Shown in pieces: positions 29,792 through 46,339 of a stretch of 64,000 nucleotides of DNA (its first letter is position 1; every line of letters begins with the position of its first letter). Origin of the DNA: Hyphochytrium catenoides (lineage: Eukaryota > Protista > Hyphochytriomycota). The DNA lies in contig FLMG01002348.1 in NCBI GenBank assembly GCA_900088475.1, positions 1 through 64,000 of the forward strand, in the 5' to 3' direction. The notes beneath the pieces were generated by a model that did no database searches, had not been told where the DNA came from, and saw only the letters and a program-made list of their open reading frames with translations. The position numbers were made by a program, and so were the translations under genes.

Positions 29792-30792
29792 AGCTCTAGA
29801 CGCGGAGCCTAGAGAGCCCGTCACAGCTCCCCCACAGCTTCTCTATATAATCAATAGAAAGGCGGTTGAAGCCTTCTTCCAAAGGCTCAGCACCGGATCT
29901 GCGTTTCTCGTGCCGCGACGGCCCTTGCACGTACTATCCCACCATAACTCAGAGCTTCATTATCGCCGAAGGGATAGAACTATGGATGCTCCCTGGATCC
30001 TCCTCACGCAACAAAGATTTTTTATAGATTCGGAGATTCGCATGCCGTTTATTGATACGAAGTTATGAGAAAGATGTAGAAAGATCTTCAACTCTAATGA
30101 CGGGAGCCAGGCCAGACCTGACCCAGGAATGTCGCTTAAACGTTCTCTAATGGGTTTCTCTGCCATGCGCTTTCCACAAACTTGACACCTGGGCAATGTA
30201 AGGCCATCTTGTCTGAAAATTTAACCGCCTTGCAGTGGTGATGGTCCTATAATTGTCTCAAGGCTAATCCAACTCACAGCTGACTTCAGTTATCGCGGTA
30301 TGGTAATCAAGCGGGACATGTAACGTCGTCTACTCGTAAGTAAAATAAAAGACTGCTGGGGAAAGCTTCAGTGATAAAACCGATGCTGGTACTTTTCCCC
30401 GCTCATAGGAGAAAGAAGTCAGGCCCTTTTCAGAAGTTTTCCCGGCTGGAACTCTCCAGCTTGAAGCAATAGAATCAGAGCCCGACTGATACCCAACATC
30501 CCACTATGATCACAGCCCGATCAACAAGTCTGTGCCGGCAGCATTAATCTCATGGACGGACTTCACGTTATATGCTCGTCAAAGCGTGCCACCATGATCC
30601 TTGAGTGAAGCTCTCCTTAGGGATCCATTTGAAATCCACGTTGCCAACCCCACGTCTGATTCTGATTGATGCGGGTCGATACATTTGGTGAAAGGGGGCA
30701 GATTCTGCCTTCCGATGAATGAGACGATAATGCACAAGCCATACTACCTCCAGTAGGGTCAAGAAAATCGCACCGGACGGGTCTATTGTGCC

Positions 30793-33700
30793 ATGAGCAA
30801 GCTCTCGGCTTTCCTTTCTAGAACTCCTAACTCACAGGGTAAAATCAACCTCTCCTCACCGAGATCGGATGGAGGCCACTCTCCAGCAGAGTTGTCTACT
30901 AGCAAGTACTCGATAAACAATGGGCCCAAGGTCCGAGAAATCGGGTCTGACCAACCTGGTATGCCACGGCTATTTCAAAAGTGGATTACGAAGCAGTCTC
31001 TCTCTCTGATTCTAATCTCTAGATCTGCATTCTTGCCTCACGTACATAGTTGCTGCTCCGACCTTTTCACCATCATCTTGATGATCCGTTCAAATAGGAT
31101 CTGATGTCATTCAACTTCAAGTGCCCAATGGCAATGCCTGCGAGAAAGCGTTTGTGGGTGCGCACGGACGAACATGTCCAAGGGTCAAAGCGCTAGCGGA
31201 GAGAAGGCGGTCGGGTATGACTTGGCACGCTTCCTTTCCTCTTACTGTATGCTGTACGCTGGGAGGGCTGTTCTATACCAAACATCTCGAAATATGCTTT
31301 TCCTTGTGTCCATTCGTTGGTGCCTGTTGTGGGAAGGCATTTCCTGCCAAAGCGACTTGACGCCAAGATGTCTGACCTAGATCGGGAGACATTCTATCCG
31401 AGATACCTATTGTGGCCGCGGTGGGGCTCCACACGTTTGAACTACTATTTCGCTGCTAACTGAGCTCTCGAAAATGTTTGGGATTGTCATCATCTCCTCC
31501 TACCTCCGTTGTTTGCTCTTCGAACATACAGCGAGCTGGGTGGACCCAGGACTGGTTGCCCAGTTCAAGGGTGTGGCTCAGCTGACCGTTCGTAACAATG
31601 AGGGTGGTGAAGAGACTGGAAGGGCAAGAGGCCGATCCCTATCTGCCCCTTACCTTTTAGAACGAGGGAATGCCTGCGAATCGCAGGTGGAAAGAAGGGA
31701 CTGGATGAAGGTTGAAGCTATTGAAGACCTCTTTGCGCGGCAAGGAAGACTTCTGGTACCTCGTGCGGCATTCTGCTTTTTGAACTTTGACCCTTGCGTT
31801 TCGCGAATGGTAGATGTTTGACGCTTGTCTTCGCGGCGCTTCTCCGCAGCTCCATGATTTCTTCCCACATTTGCCCTTCTCTCTCACCACTCCCAAGTTC
31901 TCGGCGGTTCTTAAGTGAAGACTTCCTTTCCCGTCTTTTCGTATCAGGTGGAAGATGCACTTTCATTGATAAAACAAGCGACAGAATTGCTCCAAAGTGA
32001 GCAAAATGTACTGCAGATAGAGGCGCCCGTAGTAGGTCAGAAAGCGCTCTCTCTCTTTCCTCCTCCCTTCGGATACCTCCTTTCCTAAAGTAGTTTCCGG
32101 TACAGCGGCAATGGTCGGCCTCAGGTTTTGCAGATCTTGCACTCGGGTCGTCGTCTTTTCTACCACTAGTGCTGTCAGTTCTCTTGATCCCTAATCTATG
32201 CACCTTGCCGTCCTAGTATGTGGGGACATCCATGGCCAATACTTTGACTTGCTGGAGATTTTCAGGATAGCGGGGCGTCCTCCAGCAACTAAATTGCTGT
32301 TTTTGGGAGACTACGTTGGTGAGTGCGAAAGATTAAAATGACTGAACTCCTTGACCTCGTTTCTTTTTTGGCTTTCCAGCTTCCTTACCACGCTCTCTTT
32401 TTGGGCGTCTTCTCTTACCACCCTCCTCAAAGCTCGTTCTCATCCGTTGTTCTGTCCAAGCTTTTTTCTCTCCTACATGAATCCCAAGCGTCGGTGCTCC
32501 ACCGCCTGTTCCACCTTCTGATATTCGCTCTATTTGTCTACGTCTGGTTTTGATCATCCGTACCTCTCCAGACCGCGGTAACTTCTCGTGTGAGGTCTTT
32601 CTTCATCTATTAGCTTTAAAGCTCCAATATCCCTCTCATATCTTCCTTTTGAGAGGAAATGATGAGGGTAGAAGCGTTTCTTCAGTATTCGGGTTCAAGG
32701 ACGAATGTGAGTACTCGTCAACGCGAGGAGGAGTCAAAAGCAAAGTCGAGCTTGGAAGGAGCCTTTCCCGCTCGTAGTGCTGACGCTTCTCTTCGTGACT
32801 TAGCGTAACCTTTCCCATCACTTCGGATGAGCCTGTTGCATTTTTTAGGGGAATCCATGTCAGCTTTATCGCTCCAGCTCTCTATTTACAGCTCCTATCA
32901 TGTCCTCATTGTGTACCGAAATATGGGTCTCGCCCTGTCACTTACTTTCTGGTCTGTCTGCAGGTAAGATGAAATATGGTTTGCAGGTATTCAATCGTGC
33001 AGTGTACTGCTTCGATACGCTCCCGTTGGGGGCCGTGGTCATCACAGATTACGGAAGGTTCCTTTGTCTACATGGCGGTCTGTCACCAGGTAATGGGTTA
33101 TTAGCGTCGGCGATAACAAGCAAGGACCACTTCCAAAGGCTGAGTTGTCAATCTCTTAGACATTACAGAATTGTCTCAAATTGAGGACATAAATAGGGAA
33201 CAAGAGCCAGACACTAGCGGACCTCTCTGCGATCTCCTATGGGCCGACCCTATCAAAGACGGTAAGCAGAACTAAAGAGGGTGCCAGAGTGAAAGTTGGG
33301 GCAGAAAGAGGTTCAAAGGGCAACTTGATTAAGACAGCAACGGAAATCAATAGAAGAAGCACACTCTCTAAGTAGTTCTGCATAAAGTGTTCTTCTGCTA
33401 GGGAAGTCTCTTCGTCTTGCTAGAACCGCCGCCGGCCCCTTACCTCTAACTCTTGACAAGTTTAATAGCCATATCCCCTTCCTCCTGTACTAGACCAAGT
33501 GGTACATATGGAGGACAATCAAGTCGAGGACTTTCTGAATTTGCAATGGCTACCAAACGCGGTACGAATGTTAGAAGGTTCTTACGTCCTAGGTCGCCTC
33601 TTTCTTAATTGCTGTTCGACTTTCCGGTCATCTCCATGACGATGCTTCGGTTGCTATTCCAATCGATAGCTAGACAACGGATCGGCGGACAATTCTCGCT

Positions 33701-36700
33701 CTTGTACCTCTCTTAGACTATTTTGGCTGTTACCTTAACTCTTGCTGCGACAGTCAACGTTCTATGAGAATTAGAGGGAGAGTCTCCTTGATGTGGCCAT
33801 TCCCTTCTCTATAAGGTTTTCTAATCGTTTCTGAAACTCCTTTCAAGAGCCGTGGCTGTTCTTATATGTTCGGCTATGACGTACTGGAACGCTTTCTCCT
33901 TGCAAATGGTCTGGTGGGGGTCATAAGAGCGCACGAGGTGTGTTTTCGTCGTCCATTCTCTCTCAGCCCTCATCCTCCTCTACTTCTGCTTCATGTATCG
34001 GGCCCAGGCTTCCGTTTAAGAAGCTGTATCTAACGAGCTGAGGCCGACGCCTCCGACACTTGCGCAGGTACAGGAGGAAGGCTATTATAGCCATTTTGAT
34101 TCGCGAAAGCTACCTTTGGACGTGAGAGCGATTCCTCCGTTAATCACAATTTTCTCGGCACCTAATTACTGCGGAAAGTATGGCAACAAGGTGTGTAGCA
34201 TGTTTTCCCCTTCAGGTGATGTTTTAGTCTCAGAATCCTTCTGGTTCTGTCTGCTTCTCTATGAATTATTTTCACTGTTGCCATTGATTACGGTCATGGA
34301 TGGCGTTCATTCTGAACTCCTTTCTCTAGGCTGCGGTTTTGAAAGTAGGTCGGACAGTCCCGGAGTTTCAGTTTATTCAATTCCAGTCTACCTCCCATCC
34401 GGACCCTATACCTGTTCCGAAGTGAGTGCATGCATGCAAGCTATGTCAACCGCCCTTTGGTTGTCTCTCCGATGCCCAGAATGGCAAATCACCTCATGCT
34501 GTAATTCGTCACATTTTCTTGTCGCTTCCCACCAAGTAAGCTACCCTTGTACCTCTGCTCCGTTGCTAGCCTTTGGGTCACGCTGTCGGTATCCGAGTTT
34601 GAGTCTGATCAAGTCGCTCAACTTGGTCGCTCACCTGTTGGTCCTGTGGACATGTCATGCGTGCTCTGACTGACGAGCTCTATCAATCATTTTGCAGTCA
34701 GGCTGAGGCCACACAGAGCTATCTGGAGAGAACCCTTCCATATATGCCCACAACTTTTCGCCTTCTCTTGCGTGCTACCCAAGAACTAGGTCCACCTACT
34801 ATTGGGGAGGACATGGGCAGCTTTGACGCAAATGAAGAAGTGCTAGACAACAATGACGCCTCGGCAAGGGTTGTCGAAGACTTGGAGGGTAAGCTACTGG
34901 ACAACTACTATGACGAAGGGCAGGAGTGTAAGCATTTTGCCCGCAAGCAGACTTGTTCGGTTGCGATAAGGAAGAAGGGAACCAAACAAAAGCTGGGGAG
35001 GAGCAAGATAACCTCAGCTCTTCGAGGGCTGGGTATGACGGTATGGCACTCCTTCTTGTTCATGCGCCCTTCTCTGACAGCTGCCACAACGACCTCTTCT
35101 GTGCTGTCGATGGTCTGGTGAGTCTCGCACTTATTCGTGGCGGTTTTGTTCGGTTCCTACCGTCTTTCGGCTTTCGCCAATTGACTGCCGCAGGAACCAC
35201 TATTAAATTCATTTACAGATCTCCAGTCCAAATATCGAGAAGCTGCGCGAAGTGACGTGTTGAATGAAATGAACCCAACCGTCATTGAACAGAGACTCAA
35301 GGTAGGGTCAAGAAGGGCTTAACTGGAAAGGGCCATTTATAGATTATGTTCACTAAAGGGAGAAGAGGATAAAAGGAGAGATGGTGGCGTAGGGTTTTGA
35401 CACCGTGCCTCTTAGCATGCAAGTATTGGTTCTGAGCTGGAGTTTGTGACGGAAGAAATGAATCTTGCGCAGAGTAAGGGATATCCTCTTAGAGGAATAT
35501 GATCCAATTCCTAGATGAGTTTGTTCAAGTGCTCTTTGTCAACACTGGTTCATCCTCGCACCTATCTACCAGCTACCATCCCAAGACATCTTTTTTGTTG
35601 GAACCTGAGAAGCTTCCCATAATAGGTTACCGGGGTCTTGTACTTCTAATTTCCCCTCTTGGGTTTCGCTTCTTGACTTCATGGTGTTTGTCTCTTCCCT
35701 TCTCCTTTTGACGACATGCTATTCTCCGTGCTCACAAATGTGAAACGCACTGCATTCGAAACGCTTTAGTGCTCTCTAAAGGGGCGTTTGGTCGTATTCA
35801 GCGTGGCGAGTCTTCAGTGGTCCTGCAGCGGTTGGCTGATATAGAAAGCTGTAAGATGAGAAAGCAGCATGCGCTCTCGCGAGATCTCTCTCCTCCTGAA
35901 CTCCAAGAACGCACAGTTCATCTATCAGAGCTCAGAAAGAAATGGGAGACAATAGGTGAGTCTTGGCAGCTCTGGTGCAGAGTCTTTAGTGCGATAAATA
36001 GTCGTGGCCAGCGTCCTGTCAGGAGGCCTAAGAGAAAGGAAAGGATACAATAGTTCACCTAAAAGACTGGAAATTAGCCAGACAGACAGAAAAGCTTGGA
36101 CACCAGACAGTAAGAAGCAAAAAAGAGAAGCGAAAGTGTCAGATGCCGCTACTTAACAGCACGAAGTGAGATACCCTAGGAGCGAGGGGATTGGCTGACC
36201 TTCAGGACGCCACGTTTATTGCCTAGCGTTAGGTCAGATTAGAGCGGAAACAGGTATTCGCAGAGAGTTAAGCATATGTGGGCAGAGGCTAGGCGGAAAG
36301 GACCGTGGAAGACAAAGCTCTCAAGCTGATATTTCACTTAATGCTTACCTCGTCTTGTCTTCTTCCTGAACCATCCGCAATCTGTGTCATGCAGCGCAAG
36401 ATCGGGTCCAGAGAAAGCCGTCAGGACAAACAAGAAGAGATTCTCTGGATCAGCTTCGAGCTGAGAGACATCTAAAAGACCTCAGAGAGAGATTTGAGCC
36501 CTCAGATGTCAAGCGTAACCCTTCACCCTCCGTTCCCAGGCATAGCAGTCCGTCTACCAGGGCTACGGGTAGGAAAGGTAGCCATAAGCAGAGCACCAGA
36601 GAGGTTAGTGTGCCATTCTATTAGGACACTTTCCCTTTGTTGTCAAAGGCATTTTCTCTATCTATACTCCCTCATCCTCAAAATGCCCAATGGCCAAGCC

Positions 36701-37481
36701 CAGACTGCGGGATAACCAAACCTAGGCTAGCGATATCAAGCTTCCCGTCTTACCTCTTTTCTCCCTATATCGATCATCCCCCTTCCTTCAGCTGTGGCCT
36801 TCACTCGTCGCCTCTACATCATACTCGACACTACTCCTTGTTAAGTCCACTACTTCCATCATTGCTTGCGAGTACTTAGTTTCCTGGTGGCACTCATTAA
36901 CAAAATTGGACGGCTTTCTTGGACAGGCACCGAGACCTTTGTCCGCACTCTCGTCCTGCCCTGGCCCTTCTCCAATCTTCACTTCTGAAGAGCTGGTCGG
37001 ACTGAAACTTCTCTTTGTGGTGCTGGATCGGTCGGGCAATGACTCCATCACCACTGAAGAGCTCGCAGCCTTTGCCGAAGAGACAGGTCTACAATAGCCA
37101 AATTTATTCTCCATCTGCAATACGGCGGATTTGCGCCTTGCCACTTCCCTTTGGAAGAAGCGGTTGTCAGCGATCCTTGCTCTAGCCGTCACAAGTTTTT
37201 TCCAGTCTCCTTGCCACGTCGTAATCTGTATATTCCTCGTTACCCTCCTCGTTGCATACATTAGTAACTTCATCCTTGCATCAGCCCTATAGGTTTGTTT
37301 GATTTCCGATATGGTTTCTAATCAGTCTTCCTCTCTAGGGTCTATTGCTGACCACACTGCGGTGGAAGCTTGCATGACAGCCCTGGATGCAGACTGCGAT
37401 GGTCAAATAGGGTTCGAGGACTACTTGCAATTTGCCGCGAGGTTGAAAGACATGCACATGCGCCGACAGGAAAGGTCCTAG
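30793..37481 (+). CDS. Calcineurin-A (PP2B)-like PPP phosphatase with C-terminal EF-hand pair; catalytic GNHE reads GNDE
   Basis: Exons give [80 protein letters not shown], an AID-like [15 protein letters not shown], and EF loops [12 protein letters not shown] and [12 protein letters not shown]. Stop TAG at 37479-37481. The 5' exons are less certain. Confidence 0.88.
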
Positions 37482-38019
37482 AGGCAGAAGCAGCAAGGAC
37501 TGTCGCATTCTCAAAATAGGAGAGGCGTACATTTCGTGCTGTGGCTCTTCAGATATCTGCCAAGGTTCACATATACTGCTCAGTATACGTGCTGAGAAAA
37601 TTGTGAGACGTCTTCTTCGGACTCTTCCCCTGTCTTACAGAACTTTCAATGAGCGTCCAACGCTAGCTCTTATTCGAATGCCCGGATGAGTAATGGATGG
37701 TCCATCTCCGCACACCCTTCCTCCTCCATTAGCTACCATAGGTCGCCTAAGACAGCTACAGCTGTGTCTCAGGTCCACCTACTCCTCATCTTGCTTTCCA
37801 TTAGAGTTATAGGACAGGTATCTATATAGATCAGTCGAAGAGGCAGATTAAGAAAGGTCATTCCATTTATCAATATGTTACTACCATAGAACCAGGATCA
37901 TAAGTAGAAGAGAGGAGGAGGAAGCCTGGCACCGCCACATGCCCTAAATAGATCACCCAAGAAAGTATAGCGCAGGACACATTATCTCTTCCTTTGCTCT
38001 GAAGAACTTGCTACAATTG

Positions 38020-41000
38020 TCACTTCATGTTTGAGACAAGTTTGGCATACTTTCCGTTGAGAGCTACAAGTTGGTCATGCGTGCCTTCCTCTCTCACTTT
38101 TCCTCTCTCAATATAGTATATTCTATCAGCGTTCTTGATGGTCGACAGACGATGTGCGATAATTAGAGTGGTTCTTTTCTTCATCTGCAGCAGGTCATCC
38201 AATGCCTTTTGGACAATTGCCTGTGATTTCAGGACGAGGGCCAAGCCAGATTACAGAATTACGTTAGAAAGACGGTCCAATAGGCGGAGTGAAGAAGACC
38301 AGGTACTTGAATGGTTCAGACTGAAGATGTATCGAGAAAGGGTGAGCGTTTGATGAAGGCTCCAGTAGCGGTCTCTTGGAATGGAGAGAGGAAACCGAAG
38401 GAGACTTTGGCTTCCAATACCTCGCTTTCGGTATCAAGGGCTGAGGTCGCCTCGTCTAGAAGGAGGATAGCTGGATCGCGAATGATTGCACGTGCGATGG
38501 CAATGCGCTGCTTCTGCCCTCCGGAAAGCTGGACACCTACAGATCACGCAAGAAAGGAACGGCAGAGCGTGAGGAAACTTGGAAGATAAAGGGGCTACGA
38601 AGAGAGATGTTGTCCAACCTTTCTCTCCGACTAGTGTCTCGTACTGGTCCGGCAGGTTGCAGATAAACGAATGGGCATTTGCCATCTTTCCAAGACGCAA
38701 AGGTGTAGAGCGTTAGCAAGGGTGCAATGTAGCTGTGGAAGAAGATAGCCGCTATACCTTAGCTGCCGCGATAATCTCATCCATCGTAGCATCGGGTTTG
38801 CCATAAGAGATATTCTCGCTAATACTTCCGGAAAAGAGAACCGGCTCTTGACCTACCAGGCCAATCTGAGAACGGAGCCAGCTCACGTTAATGTCAGGAA
38901 GGGGTACCCCGTCCAATGAGATCGAGCCGCTTCGTGGATCTGTGAGAGGTTACAATAATAAGAAGCACGGCGATTTAGTACAGTACTAAAATGCGAAGAA
39001 AGCGGAGAAGGTGAGGGGTCTGGGCAGTTCATGAGTTGGGACCAGACAGTGGGGCTGAAGATAAATAGCGAGTTGAAGGAAGCGAGCGGTGTTTCGCGTA
39101 CCATAGAACCTCTCTAGGAGATTGACAGCAGTACTCTTGCCACTGCCACTTGCTCCAACTAATGCCACAGTCTGGCCAGCTGCCACCTTGAAGGTATAAC
39201 CGCGGCACACTGGAACCTTGATAGAAGAATAGTGTTCAATAAGACGCTAGATATCTACCGAGAAACCTTCCCAAGAACTTGGAGACAGGAGATATTCCAA
39301 GGGATGCAACTATGGCGATCAAAGCAAGGGAACAGCCAGACAAATGGCTTACATTCGGTCTGCTGGGGTAGCTGAAGCGCACTTCGTTAAAGCTGACTTC
39401 CCCTGCCACCTTCTGAAGTATCTTTCCTTTCTCACTCTCCGAGTCAATCTTCGGGTCGGAGTCAATGAGTGAGAAGACATTACTAATAGCAACTCGTGCC
39501 TTGGAGCTATCTGTCATATCTTGGGCGGCGTTTCCAAACCCGTAGGCGCTGTTGATAAAATAGTGGATGAGAACCTCTACAGAGCATGAAAGCAACAACA
39601 AAAGCAGAAGACAAAGTGTGTGGACGGAGGAATCAGGGGTGCCCATCGCACAGCAAGACGAACTCTCTTTAACACTCTCTAGTGCTTCACTGCCTCTCAC
39701 CTTAGTAGAATAACCACAACCGCCACGAGGAGGGCCTGGAAGCTGATCTTTCTTGGGCTGGTATCTGGGAGAGTGTATAGTTTCGAGCCATACCAAAACA
39801 CAAGAGCCAGAACACCTAAAACTAACATCTGGCTTGCACCAAATGCTAGTCCCAGACCGATAGCTTGTCTCCTGGCAACCTATAGAAAACCACCAAGGAG
39901 CAGGCGTGTGAGGGCTTGACCGCACAGCGATTGTGCCAACATCTAGTTATCCAGTTACAGAGTAAGAGCACACTGAGAAGAGAGCGTTCGTACCTTTCGA
40001 TTAGCATAGAGACCCTCTGCATAGCGGTTGATGATGGTCTCTTCCAGATCAAACGCAGCCACTGTTCTAATGTTATTAATTCCTGCAGGAAGTCACTCTC
40101 AGACGCTAGTACTGAAAGCGCAACCGACTGTCCTGCCCTCTCTTACTTCTAGTCAAGACACAAGATCTCACCTTCAGAGATCACACTAGCAGTTCCCTGC
40201 TTCAGGTTGCCTTCATTTTGCTTGACTCTTGCATACTCGACGACACCGGTAAAAGCCAGCAGAGGAAAGACTGCCAACATAATAAGAGACATCTCCCACG
40301 AGTAGAAGAAGGAGATACAAAGTGCAAGAATAAGGGAGAAGAGGTTTGCCACATGGCGTGCGATGCTTTCTCCAGTCTGGGACTGTATTAGCGTGCAGTC
40401 CTCGGCTAGCCTAAGAGAAAATTTCATTTTAGTGCTGCAGAAGGATTGCAATAGAGCCGAAAGAAGCTAGGTTGTTGAGACACATGCACGTGCTGATAGC
40501 TCACAAAGAACAACATAGCGACAGGGCATCGGCTTAGGAATGATACCAGGAGAGAAGACAGAGATAAAAGAAGGCTATAGAGCGCGGAGTGACTAGAATT
40601 TGTGTGAGCATCACCGCTGACAAACTGTTCCGGAGTCGTGGTTGGGCATATCAAACCACTCGATCTCCTTCCTGAGGATTGCCTTGAAGGTCTGCTCGCG
40701 GACAGCTCTAGTTACTTTCTCTCCTGCGACGCCAAAGCCATAGTATTGGGCCATGTTGCCTGAAGATATCATACGTGTAAGAGAAGGCGCAATATCGTTA
40801 TAAATTAGACCAATATGACATATCTAGCTGGAAAATACTTTCTCCTTAAGACGCCATAACATGAGGCCGTGATGAAAGGGCCATCAATTTGCGGTCTCGC
40901 AAGGAATTCAGGTGCTTAGATAGAAAGAGTTACGAGAAATGGACATACCGACAAGAGCTCCGGTGCCGACCGCGACGAACATCAGCCCATAAAAGACCGT

Positions 41001-44000
41001 GTCCTCCTCAACCTTCTCCGCGTCCACGCCTGCTCAACAGGCACAGATGGAAAATAAAGTTTAGTTAGGGAGGGATAAACGCGCAACATAAGGAGCCAAC
41101 GCGACCAGAATTGGCAGTACTTCTGTCAAGCTTCTCACTAAGAACTAACTCCGAAGTACATACCAAAGAATGAAGCAATCATCTTTGCAATAAAGAGTCC
41201 CCAGAGTGGGAAAACTGCGCCATTCATAAGAGCGCCCACCAATCCTAGACCCAGGAAGGGAAAGTTGTTGCTCCCAAGGGAGTAAAGCCGTTTGGCAGGG
41301 ACCTTGTATAGCCTAGTAGAGTAGAGAGAAGAGCAGCTGTTTGTAAGCACCTTTGGGATGTCCTTCTACATTCCAACTTCATAGATAAACGTCTCTTGGA
41401 AGGTGCGATCTCTCTCTTTGTCCTGAGGATACGTAACCTCTCCTCCGCCCTCCTCCCTTCCGGCCGAGTCCTTGTTCTTCGCGGTTACACTTACTCTTCC
41501 TTCTTTGCTCCTGTCTCTAAATCCAGCGTAATCCCGGCATTTGACTGAAAGACAGAGGTACTTGAAGAGACAAGTGTTGCGTCCCTTCCGGGATACAAAG
41601 TTGAACTTCCTGCTTCTCTGCGCTCATCCAATAGCACCTGGGAACCCCAGAGGCTACTCCGCCGGTGACACTCGTCGTCTTCATCTTTCACCTCTTCTTT
41701 CTGTCTATCAACCAGACGGCGATAGTGGCCATCTTCTATCGCTAAGAGATCTTCGTGCTTGCCTTCCTCAACCAGTCTTCCGGCCTCAAAGACAGCGATC
41801 TTATTGGCATATCGAATGGTTGATAGACGATGAGCGATAATAATAGTTGTCCGCTTATGCTTCTCCAGAAGAGAATCTAACGAGGCCTGGACAATCCGCT
41901 CGCTTTCATTATCTGTTTATAGAAGCAAGATCGCCAGGGTATGAGGCCATGAGAATATAGAGGAGGAAAGTGAATGGACTTAGATAACGCCACGTCCTCT
42001 GACTTTCACAGGAGAGTGGACTGTCAGAGATATAACGAGGGAGATAACCAACACGCCCAAAGAAAACTTGAGGTACAAGACCTCTGCCTACCGAGTGCAG
42101 AAGTAGCTTCATCCAGCACCAAAATGGCTGGGTTCTTGATAATGGCACGAGCTATCGCAACTCGCTGGCCATTAAAACAAATGAAGGAAGGAGGAGGTGA
42201 TATTTAGTCTCGTCGTCTGAACACAACCTTTTGGTCCTATGCCTGACCTGCTTCTGCCCTCCTGAGAGCTGGATGCCCTTCTCGCCAACTTCAGTCTCAA
42301 AGCGCTTGGGGAAAGACTGAATAAACTCATAGGCGTTCGCAAGTTTGGCTGGAGAAACAAGGAGACCATGATGATGCAGGGCAGAAAAGAAAGTGTCAGA
42401 GGTGCAATAGCCATGCTCTCGAAATTCACTAGGCGCAAACGTAAGCGAATGATAGTGGATTAGCGCGCAGAAGCCCCAAGACGACAGCAGTCTCGTATGA
42501 GAACATAGGAGCGCTTGAATTCGTGAATCCGGGACAGTAATGTCTTTACCTGCACTCTCTACCTCAGCCATCGTGCAGCCAGGCTTTCCATTCGCAATAT
42601 TCTCCGCAATAGTGCCACCGAAGAGCACCGGCTCCTGACTCACAAGCCCTAAATGGTGCCAATAGAAGGTCAAAACAGAAAATAATCCAAAGTGGTGGTA
42701 GAGAGAAATGCGGTGTGAGTTTACATGACTAACTTTCAAAACGTCAAACCAGAGGCAGAAAAGAAAGAGATACTGACCAATTTGCTGTCTGAGCCATCGA
42801 ACATTAAGCGTCCTGAGATCCATCCCATCAAGGTACACCGCTCCTTCTTGAGGATCATAGAATCTTTCCAGCAGCGCTACAGCCGTGCTCTTTCCACTTC
42901 CACTATGGCCCACAAGAGCCACCGTCTCTCCTGCCCCAACCTTGAGGTTGTAGCCCCTGCAAACAGGGGCCTGAGGGCGGGTAGGATAGGCGAACGTGAC
43001 ATTTCGGAACTCCACCTGCAACGTGACATGGTAACGAAAGTGAGATAGCCACATCGTCAGTAAAACTCAGAGAAAGAAAGTCGACTGAGCAGGTCAAGAC
43101 ATACATGACCCTGGACAGGATGGAATGGCTGGGAACAGGACGACCCCTACCCACACACAGCTACATCGAGTGTGTCCTACCTCGCCTCTGACAGTTGTCA
43201 GTTTATTCCCTTCGTCGCTCATAGCATCGATATGTGGCGTGCGGTCCAGCAGGTCAAATATCGGCGCTGCCGCCGCACCAGCCCCCGCTACTGCCATGAA
43301 GGACGGCGCGGCCTGGCCAAGCGCGATGGAAGCCAGAATCACAGAAAAGAAAACACCGACGACCACACCACCTGAAGCAGTTGTACGTGTGAGGCCAAGA
43401 AGAGGTAGGACAAGAAGGTCACAAAGCTTAACAGTACCCTGCTAACGACACTAGACTCAGAAGAAAAAAGTGCCAATAAAGAGCTATAGCGCATAGACAA
43501 GGAGGTGGAGTGTCAGACCTGTGACGCAGGAGCTGTCTGATGTGCCTATGAAGCATCCCCTACGAATGTCATCAGCCACCACCTGGCCGCCATACCACAT
43601 GCCTAATGCATAGGCTGCAAATGAGAAAAAGAAGAACAAGCCGTTGGCGATCCCAAGAGCCACACTCTTCTTAATTCCTCCTCTTTCGGCGTCCTTTAGG
43701 TTCTCCGCATAGCTAAACGGGAAGAGGCAACGTTAAAGAGATAAATCAAAGAAGTGAAGCCGTAAATGGAGGAGGAGAACGCTACTGATAGGGATAGCAT
43801 ATGGAAAATGAACAAAGGTTACCTACCGTTGCACTTCTCTCTTCTGTCCGCCAAACGCGACCACAGTTCGGATGGAAGACAGCACCTCCGAGGCCACGGC
43901 CGCGGCCCGTGCATAAGCTTCCTGGGTCATGCTCTGGGCTTTCCCCGATGACCTAGAGAAAGAGACGCGAACGGATATAGAAGAGGGAAACAGGCGATGT

Positions 44001-45561
44001 CAACTAAGCAGAGCGGACAGATTAAATGAGGCAAGTGAAGGGGGATTTGAAGGACGAGTGAAGTGACCCCTTATCATTGTCGCCTCCTGGGTCCCATAGG
44101 TCTTCCCATATTGGTTGACCGGCAGTCTTTAGCATACCTCACAAGATTCCATGCAGTGAAGCCCAGAACTGGCAGCACGGAAATGATAACGAGTGTCAAT
44201 TCCCAGCTTTTAGAGAACCCCAGGGCATAGCCTCCAATAAACATCGAGGAATGCTGGATACCGTCGGCAAACTTACGACCAATGCCCTCCTATGTAAGGC
44301 CACAAGTTAGATGTCAGACATAGACACATGCCCTCTAAGTAAACCCAAGCATCTCCGCCACGCAGGATCATACTTTGACTCAAAGGTCATCAGCAAGTAT
44401 GCGGGTAGAAACGACACAAACAAACCAACAATCTTGACAGTATTGCTACCAACGGTTGACGAGAGACTAAGGCAAGGTCACAGCGAACTGTGAAACAGAA
44501 AGACAAAGAAGCTAGGGATAGCGTAATGTGTCCTAAGAAGCAGCAAAACGACAACGAGAGAGTAAGTCAACCTGAATGGCCGTTGTCTTTTCTACGACTC
44601 CGCTGACAAGGTCTCCAGAGTTCTTGAAGTCAAACCAGCCGATTTCCTGCCTCAAGATGGCAGCTACATAGTGCTTTCTCAGCTTCCTGGTCTGTCTCTC
44701 CGCAGTGGTGTTCCAGCAAAACGCTTGTAGAAAACCGGAAACGAGGGCGACCGCTGCAAAGATGCAGAGATATTGCACCTGCTTGAGCACCTCGTCCATA
44801 AACTAGCAACAACAAGAGAAGTGTGAGATGGTGGCAAGTGAGATCTTGCGCAGTGTCAGGCTAGTAGAGACATTCTAAAGAGAGAGACACTGAGTAACAC
44901 GACATCAAATCCTGAACCTAGAGACAAGTGGACTGCAGTTATTATGGAGAGGGAAGGAGGATCTGACGCGGTTCAGGAGTAAAGTGTGGATTAATCTACG
45001 CAAACGCCGAAAGGACATATACTGCAGCATGGCTCTTAAAGGTGTAGGGCGAACGTTCCAGAAAGTAGGTACAACTCCTACTTCGTCATTGGTCCCGTTA
45101 AGTGAATCAAAGAGCTGCCCAAGCACTACTGTCATCGCAGGCTGGACCAGACCCATCAGCACCGCTCCCACACTCCCCACGACCATCAGGAAGATATCAA
45201 GCTCATCTGCATAGGAGAAGATCCTAATGAAAGACGGAGTATTGGCTAGTGGATCATCCACATGGATTGCACCCTCCTCTGGAGCCCGTTCATTAGGCAT
45301 GGCAGGTTTGGCATCAGGCCTTGGGTCTCTAGTGGTGACAGACAGGTCACTCTTCCTCTCTGCCGCCTCTGTGGAAGGCCCAGATGTCTTCGGCGTCAGG
45401 GCCTGAAAGTAGGGTGCCTCAACAGGCTCTCTTGATCCCTCGGCCCCGCGCATATTCGAAGCCTCAAGGCACAAAGGTCCTGTAGCACTCGGATCCTCAC
45501 CGGGTGAGCGCGCGGCCTTTGCGCCGATGTCGGAAGCACTAGGGCTGTGAAGTTGTGACAT
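38020..45561 (-). CDS. ABCB1: Full-length ABCB1/MDR (P-glycoprotein-like) ABC transporter, TMD-NBD-TMD-NBD, multi-exon
   Basis: TMD1: [37 protein letters not shown]1: [54 protein letters not shown]2: [61 protein letters not shown]. The start ATG (MSQLHSP) is inferred. Confidence 0.95.
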
Positions 45562-46339
45562 TGTCTGATTGCATTCCTCCGCTGCCAATTTCTCAAACGT
45601 CCAGCCGTTGAGCACTCGAAGTAGCACACAAGCGCCAAGGCTGCAGAAGTACGCAGTAAGAAAGGTCAGAACGCAACTACAAGTACGGCATGGTAGAACG
45701 ACAGCGACGAAAGGCTGCTAAGCGAGACAGGACAAAGAGCGGGAGCAAAATGGAGGAGTGAGAGGCAGAGATGGAGCTGGATCGTGGGATGAACCGCTGC
45801 GCATAGGGTGTGAGCTCCAGGCAAACGGAGGCTACTAAAGATAAGAGGCATGAAGCCGAAGAAACCAACACTGCAATATACTATCAGGATTGAGGCGAGC
45901 TTCTTACGCGGAAGGACACACCGGCGGCTGTTATGTACACTGGCGAGCAGCCTAAGGTAGAGTGGTCTTAGTACTCTTAGGGCACGAAGAGAAACGAAAA
46001 ATGATGATCTGGGCTTTGGGCCTTCTCGACCTACTCTTATTAGCTCCCCTAGTGCAGCCAAGACATTGTCTCATCTACCGTCTCCCTCTCAACCCCCATC
46101 GTCTGGCGCTTCGTCAATATCGTCCATTGTGTCATCTGCATCGTTGGGCTAGGACGGGCACTTCTCACGGCTTGGGTCTGCTCCTCCCTCCGCCTGTCTC
46201 ACCGTCGACCTTACTCTTCTTGCCAGTCGACAATCCCACAACCTGTGGGCAGAAAGTCCCTTATCTAGACATTTTGGCCCTCTTCTCATGATGCCGAAAG
46301 GAGAGGATTTCTTTCGTCCTAAGATGCCGCCCAATAATC

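Follow-up and report, generated by a model that had tools for sequence, protein, structure and literature searches.

Introduction

Calcineurin (PP2B) is the textbook phosphatase that senses Ca2+ in trans, via calcineurin B and calmodulin. Calcium-dependent protein kinases (CDPKs) are kinases with an autoinhibitory junction and a fused calmodulin-like domain. Among the phosphoprotein phosphatases (PPPs), EF-hand accessory domains occur in PPEF/RdgC and in a Bsu1 subgroup present in Thecamonas, choanoflagellates, Basidiobolus and Nannochloropsis, and the fusions in these two lineages arose independently (Kerk et al. 2021, PMC8249667). In this study, we analyzed a stretch of 64,000 nucleotides from Hyphochytrium catenoides (contig FLMG01002348.1, positions 1 to 64,000; hereafter the window), in which a preliminary description had assigned positions 30793-37481 to a calcineurin-A-like protein carrying its own EF-hand pair and had proposed a calcineurin with an internalised Ca2+ sensor. 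The literature searched describes no EF-hand-bearing PP2B and no EF-hand PP2B subfamily.

Here we show that the phosphatase part of this locus is a candidate natural calcineurin pseudophosphatase, being intact and depleted of variants, with its metal ligands kept and its general-acid histidine replaced; no such natural class is described in the literature searched. We further weigh whether the phosphatase exons and the EF-hand exons downstream of them belong to one gene or to two, and outline how a fused protein might respond to Ca2+.

Results

The window DNA is intron-rich, eukaryotic and approximately 48% GC. On the plus strand, eleven stop-free segments between 31690 and 35301 join via GT-AG introns of 70-554 nt into a single open frame, and the spliced exons (N-terminal helix exon and exons A to J, Table 1) encode a complete PPP catalytic domain with GDIHG, GDYVDRG, LLRGNDE, LHGGLSP, RGCSY and RAHE. 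Each motif named in the preliminary description was recovered on this strand at its given position or close to it. A calcineurin A profile was built from 26 intronless calcineurin A open reading frames (ORFs) of metagenome and metatranscriptome contigs, which had been picked by a DNA pattern encoding FSAPNY-x7-AA[VIM]LK. When searched against the six frames of the 64 kb, this profile recovered the same catalytic exons in collinear order, which independently confirmed the catalytic exon model; elsewhere in the 64 kb it gave only two sub-threshold matches of 4-5 bits.

The spliced catalytic domain matched canonical calcineurin A with 45-47% identity over ~310 residues (E ~1e-93, ~283 bits), compared with 40% identity and 206 bits for a PP1-type ORF, whose identity was checked against solved structures, and 39% identity and 181 bits for an ORF of the RSHE type (L115). 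The calcineurin A profile scored the spliced protein at 357.8 bits, and the calcineurin-specific features RGCSY, RAHE, a long insert 5' of the next core motif, and NKAAVLK followed by HP were all present. Less information came from individual exons: single-exon searches of solved structures separated the PPP families only weakly, and a protein-cluster search with one exon returned generic Metallophos clusters only. We then placed the domain in a maximum-likelihood tree whose reference set consisted of calcineurin A, PP1-type and RSHE-type sequences, with no PP2A, Bsu1, PP5, PP7 or PPEF. The window domain was the long-branch sister to 38 canonical calcineurin A sequences, which formed a clade without it (support 96/95), and the PP1-type and RSHE-type sequences fell outside. 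The preliminary assignment to PP2B rather than PPEF thus agrees with the scores and also with the tree, a small one lacking bona fide PPEF, PP5 and PP7 sequences. From its sequence, we read the locus as encoding a diverged PP2B-like paralogue of calcineurin A.

The catalytic core lacks the catalytic histidine of calcineurin. All core motifs of the PPP set are present except GNHE, which reads GNDE, with the Asp codon GAT at 32661-32663 (+) in exon C; in the ungapped alignment of this exon to 1AUI, the Asp aligns to H151 of human calcineurin A. An independent DNA run from 2017 provides a contig over 32418-32883 that carries the same codon and shows two differences only, both away from it, so the Asp is not an assembly error. 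By contrast, the histidine is present in each of the 146 calcineurins compared; it is kept in all 120 best PP2B database matches and in 33 of the 33 GNxE-bearing calcineurin-type ORFs of metagenomic loci (one PP1-type ORF among them). The general acid is lost while the metal site is intact: each of the six metal-ligand positions is retained, and so are both phosphate-binding arginines. The H151Q substitution is a standard catalytically inactive calcineurin mutant (PMC11474076). An Asp at this position might keep some general-acid capacity; nevertheless, since the general-acid His is replaced, a pseudophosphatase or a very weak enzyme appears more likely than a normal phosphatase, and the Ca2+-switched phosphatase of the preliminary description becomes doubtful on the same ground.

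Downstream of the catalytic domain, the predicted tail consists of the post-catalytic strand ending in HP, an N...LPY...F..LLL segment, an acidic stretch, a basic segment that opens with ARK and occupies the last part of exon I, and the autoinhibitory-like exon J, in the element order of calcineurin A. For comparison, the human calmodulin-binding and calcineurin-B-binding-helix peptide sequences were taken from PMC8470620, and the human autoinhibitory peptide sequence appears in passages of PMC11662586 and PMC5748596. The calcineurin-B-binding-helix region, which is created by the join 34421/34698, had been described as strongly diverged, and indeed no significant similarity was detected to the human peptide (p 0.53) or to the 26-sequence profile. 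As only LPY and F..LLL remain, the helix is, judging from the residues, effectively lost. The basic segment lies where the calmodulin site was expected, as in the preliminary description, but its similarity to the human calmodulin-binding peptide is not significant (p 0.26). Exon I as a whole had no phmmer match among 1.84 billion representatives and no Pfam match.

The autoinhibitory-like exon J likewise sits in the right place. Taking F-E-E-A-K-x-L-D-x-x-N-E-R-M-P as the canonical motif, its similarity to the human peptide was marginal (p 0.06). The full calcineurin A profile aligned exon J to the autoinhibitory columns with a weak conditional E of 0.013, and an ungapped matrix from 26 autoinhibitory motifs ranked it 4th of 66,548 six-frame windows. 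Motif-only hidden Markov models (HMMs) and window-wide peptide scans did not pick out exon J, and no match was found among solved structures. The autoinhibitory assignment is therefore plausible but unproven. In this region we also observed an acceptor (gctttag/TG) at 35768-35770, directly past a pyrimidine tract and in phase with the exon I donors (35032 or 34888); given this phase match, a transcript omitting exon J and running from exon I into the exon K frame would stay in frame.

The two EF-hands placed by the preliminary description at 37026-37061 and 37386-37421 were recovered. Both loops match PROSITE PS00018, accounting for two of the three such matches in the six-frame translation of the window, and both exons match solved EF-hand structures (Table 1). 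The join 37086/37339 places exactly 24 residues between the two loops, which is the inter-loop spacing of calmodulin, and two listed indels (1 bp and 8 bp) between 37086 and 37339 are both intronic. Per-exon Pfam EF-hand scores fall under the gathering cut-offs. Among solved structures, Entamoeba CaBP1/2 and calmodulin come closest, and calcineurin B appeared only inside a calmodulin fusion chain. Judged by these sequence matches, the EF-hand pair is genuine and calmodulin-like, not calcineurin-B-like. Because its closest solved relatives are CaBP1/2 and calmodulin, an internalised calcineurin B is not specifically supported.

We next compared variants from three DNA contig sets with the window; no RNA run was listed among the sequencing runs, and the sets showed no joints. 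Within 6 kb (31750-37700) there were ~120 single-nucleotide polymorphism (SNP) sites and 21 indel sites, distributed as a mosaic across the three DNA runs and the window, a pattern suggestive of either a heterozygous diploid or a mixture of strains and of an assembly that switches haplotypes. Predicted exons are depleted of the listed SNPs and indels (P 1e-4 overall, 0.003 for exons A-J and 0.006 for exons K-N). None of the 21 indels lies in a predicted exon, all being in predicted introns or untranslated regions (UTRs), and of the five SNPs within exons, three are synonymous. With its frames unbroken, its exons avoided by variants and free of indels, and most exonic SNPs synonymous, the gene appears not to be a pseudogene in decay.

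Whether the catalytic exons and the EF-hand exons form one fused gene is, on the sequence, a nearly balanced question that leans, if at all, slightly to the doubtful side. Our best explanation, to which we give almost an even chance, is a calcineurin-A-like protein with Asp for His that is spliced on to the EF-hand pair. Exon J would be spliced at 35301 to four exons (35802-35955, 36395-36603, 36927-37086 and 37339-37481), yielding a fused protein of ~700-800 residues. Exons M and N and candidate exon L hold no in-frame ATG and hence require upstream coding exons, and the joins K/L, L/M and M/N have consensus sites and matching phases. The 500-nt gap between exons J and K starts purine-rich and has a pyrimidine-rich 3' part (0.61 over 35481-35801), a build shared with the modelled K-L gap and with the long E-F intron, which has homology support, compared with 0.50-0.51 in two flanking intergenic regions; pyrimidine content is only a mild hint. 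The avoidance of exons K-N by listed variants (P 0.006) and the precedent of PPEF and the Bsu1 subgroup count on the same side. Exon J ends on a usable phase-0 donor (AAG/GT), and two phase-0 acceptors precede the exon K coding frame. We rejected phase compatibility as evidence of fusion, since in-frame splice paths abound.

The same exons can be divided between two adjacent same-strand genes, an arrangement whose chance we put somewhat below even: a pseudophosphatase ending at the TAA at 35320-35322, and a separate EF-hand gene starting at ATG 35847 and encoding ~217 residues, basic and disordered in the N-terminal half, with one EF-hand pair. In that case, the phosphatase-like protein would be a calcineurin-derived pseudoenzyme and the EF-hand protein an unrelated small Ca2+ sensor. 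Several observations favor this division and count against a fusion. Read-through of exon J stops six codons on, giving a canonical short C-terminus, and 26 of 26 aligned canonical calcineurins end within a few to ~45 residues past the autoinhibitory motif. No other ATG precedes ATG 35847 in its open frame, and its -3 position is A; past exon J, ~180 nt (35302-35480) are purine-rich and non-coding, like a 3' UTR. The 524-bp gap easily accommodates a gene boundary in a genome this compact, where only 540 bp separate the EF-hand stop codon from the stop of the convergent neighbour. One gap alone (35990-36330) can yield 25 alternative cassette exons that stay in frame, the autoinhibitory-like motif is only marginally supported, and a codon-usage score trained on ~1.2 kb was not decisive for candidate exon L. 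The combined calcineurin and EF-hand architecture was found in none of 120 database proteins and none of 116 metagenomic loci, canonical sets that could not reveal a diverged subfamily. These 120 best PP2B proteins came from a search in which the window exons were aligned with four calcineurin A ORFs of metagenomic origin, and it returned canonical calcineurins only; all carry PF00149 alone and none an EF-hand Pfam domain, and an EF-hand loop was absent from all of the ~27 full-length metagenomic calcineurin A ORFs. On the other side, a 3' UTR, a promoter and a 5' UTR would all need to fit into the 524 bp, 35481-35801 has the pyrimidine content of this gene's introns rather than that of the intergenic regions, and the exon J donor faces acceptors of its own phase; none of these counter-points is strong.

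Two further accounts concern the phosphatase part itself. That it is a decaying calcineurin A pseudogene, no longer expressed as protein, would fit the lost catalytic His, the lost similarity at the calcineurin-B-binding helix and calmodulin site, the very long tree branch and an exon I without a homologue. We nevertheless consider this improbable: at least ten exons are in frame with intact GT-AG borders and are free of stops and frameshifts, the metal ligands are all retained together with both arginines, and the variants are distributed as described above (P 0.003 for exons A-J, no exonic indel, three of five exonic SNPs synonymous). Even less probable, in our judgment, is a known EF-hand phosphatase of the PPEF/RdgC or PP7/PP5 group that is not calcineurin-like. 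The PP5/PP7/PPEF group carries GDFVDRG and RSHE. The window domain has GDYVDRG and RAHE, although of these only RAHE versus RSHE discriminated here, the RSHE-type ORF L115 reading RSHE but GDYVDRG, at odds with that signature. C-terminal EF-hands are the hallmark of PPEF, and PPEF is widespread in protists, including oomycetes (PMC8249667). The domain nonetheless scored 283 bits against calcineurin A and 181 against the RSHE-type ORF (no bona fide PPEF, PP5 or PP7 being compared), it has the calcineurin-specific RGCSY, long insert and NKAAVLK, and there is no IQ motif upstream, as no full consensus occurs in any plus-strand frame of 30500-31950. Short peptides of the window protein were absent from the supplementary sequence tables of PMC8249667.

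The coordinates of all predicted features are collected in Table 1.

Table 1 Predicted features of the phosphatase and EF-hand locus in the window
Feature	Position	Strand	Evidence or remark
Candidate first coding exon	30793-30958	+	ATG 30793, donor-like GT at 30959; ATG-initiated ORF
N-terminal helix exon	31687-31755	+	Calcineurin A profile from position 29; blastp match at EGRL region
Exon A, pre-catalytic helix	31948-32035	+	Calcineurin A profile HMM 46-73, E 4e-4
Exon B, GDIHG and GDYV(D)	32217-32318	+	Pfam Metallophos E 3.5e-7; profile 52.5 bits
Exon C, (D)RG...LLRGNDE	32572-32706	+	Ungapped alignment to 1AUI residues 122-165
Exon D, KMKY...LPLGAVV...LHGGLSP	32964-33089	+	Profile 33.7 bits
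Exon E	33160-33261 (alternative start 33169)	+	Profile 34.6 bits
Exon F, RGCSYMFGY...VIRAHE	33816-33937	+	Top solved-structure matches PP2B; profile 29.5 bits
Exon G, VQEEGY then 18-residue insert	34068-34190	+	Top solved structure PPP3CA; profile 20.1 bits
Exon H, AAVLK..., post-catalytic strand	34330-34421	+	Calcineurin A profile alignment up to hPywlP
Exon I, degenerate calcineurin-B-binding-helix region, acidic stretch, basic segment (ARKQ...SALRGL)	34698-35032	+	
Exon J, autoinhibitory-like motif	35219-35301	+	Ends at donor AAG/GTAGGG, phase 0
In-frame TAA	35320-35322	+	Six codons past exon J if its donor is unused
Candidate exon K, charged linker	35802-35955	+	Splice sites and frame; best of three frames by codon score
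Candidate exon L, basic Ser/Pro-rich linker	36395-36603	+	Consensus splice sites, frame
Exon M, EF-hand 1	36927-37086	+	Loop 37026-37061; PS00018; Pfam EF-hand_6 E 0.004; PDB E 2.5e-8
Exon N, EF-hand 2	37339-37481	+	Loop 37386-37421; PS00018; Pfam EF-hand_7 E 2e-4; PDB E 4e-7

The candidate first exon matched neither Pfam nor the calcineurin A profile, and the N-terminal helix exon has an uncertain 5' boundary, its ORF being open from 31441. Exon E is preceded by two in-frame acceptors 9 nt apart (cttag/ACATTACAG/AATTG, window 33160-33169), which could yield isoforms with or without residues D-I-T directly after HGGLSP. Exon H alone had no match in the PDB, and a protein homologue search with a stop-free 217-residue frame at exon G (five candidates) gave no match. 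Viral contigs showed no match to a 72-residue frame or to a DNA pattern. Candidate exon K contains its sole in-frame ATG at 35847 and no listed variant. The 365 nt past its donor (35956-36320) are purine-rich (pyrimidine 0.37), resembling the flanking charged-linker exons, and hold several open frames of 45-56 codons; the linker may include an extra or alternative exon there, and the best cassette exon in 35990-36330 is 36023-36109, whose acceptor is good and whose donor reads GTAAGA. Exon N ends with the stop TAG at 37479-37481.

Downstream, the minus strand at 38020-45630 carries a multi-exon ABC transporter gene with Walker A and signature-like motifs, the last exon of which ends at ~38020. 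The third PS00018 match of the window, at 41715-41753 (+), is antisense to this ABC transporter region and is most likely due to chance. The RSHE-type ORF used for comparison is itself unusual. Located at positions 41-1288 of metagenome contig L115, it encodes a 416-residue PPP that has RSHE and LNRGNHE, motifs we take to be typical of the PP5/PP7/PPEF group, and ends directly after the catalytic core; its 145-residue N-terminal extension contains a hydrophobic, transmembrane-like stretch, and from these features it looks like an unusual membrane-anchored PPP.

Discussion

If the two parts of the locus form one gene, the fused protein suggests a mechanistic model. The calmodulin-like EF-hand pair would be joined to the tail by a charged and probably disordered linker of ~140 residues. 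In a manner analogous to CDPKs and PPEF, the Ca2+-bound pair would clamp an amphipathic segment in the same chain, for which the basic segment or the remnant helix are candidates, and clamping would pull the autoinhibitory-like segment from the active-site cleft. Because the catalytic acid is missing, the likelier output is that phosphoproteins would be bound or trapped in a Ca2+-gated manner, or hydrolysed very slowly, rather than dephosphorylated at a normal rate. For a fused protein, a Ca2+-gated pseudophosphatase thus seems more likely than a Ca2+-switched phosphatase. The complete proposal, in which a single chain combines a disabled PP2B domain, an autoinhibitory-like pseudosubstrate and an EF-hand pair into a CDPK-style switch that signals via Ca2+-gated phosphoprotein binding without calcineurin B or calmodulin, is more tentative than the fusion itself, and we regard it as possible but rather doubtful. 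If true, the locus would represent a third independent fusion of a PPP with EF-hands, after PPEF and Bsu1-EF, and would indicate that a PP2B fold can be adapted to in-cis Ca2+ sensing, paralleling CDPKs, PPEF and Bsu1-EF.

Calcineurin A is the best sequence match of the window protein. The two share RGCSY, RAHE, the long insert and NKAAVLK..HP, and the window tail keeps the same order of an LP[FY] remnant, a basic segment and an A-x3-D-x2-NE-x2-P autoinhibitory-like motif. However, calcineurin A has GNHE where the window protein has GNDE, and neither the B-binding helix nor the calmodulin site is detectably conserved in the window protein. At the residues aligned to NIR, which belong to the PxIxIT docking strand of calcineurin, the window protein reads FIQ. 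It branches outside all 38 sampled canonical calcineurin A sequences and may bear a C-terminal EF-hand pair. The engineered H151Q form of calcineurin A has the same residue replaced, but there the change is engineered and to Gln, whereas here it is natural and to Asp.

In PPEF/RdgC and Bsu1-EF, the PPP domain is followed by C-terminal EF-hands and Ca2+ is sensed in cis, as would likewise be the case in the window protein if fused. It differs from them in belonging to another PPP clade (PP2B-like), in having no IQ motif and in missing the catalytic acid and, if fused, in carrying a single EF-hand pair after a long disordered linker. With the CDPKs it would share the inferred logic of placing a tethered EF-hand module on the same polypeptide as a pseudosubstrate or autoinhibitory segment. 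A CDPK, however, is a kinase with four EF-hands, whereas the window protein would be a phosphatase fold with two.

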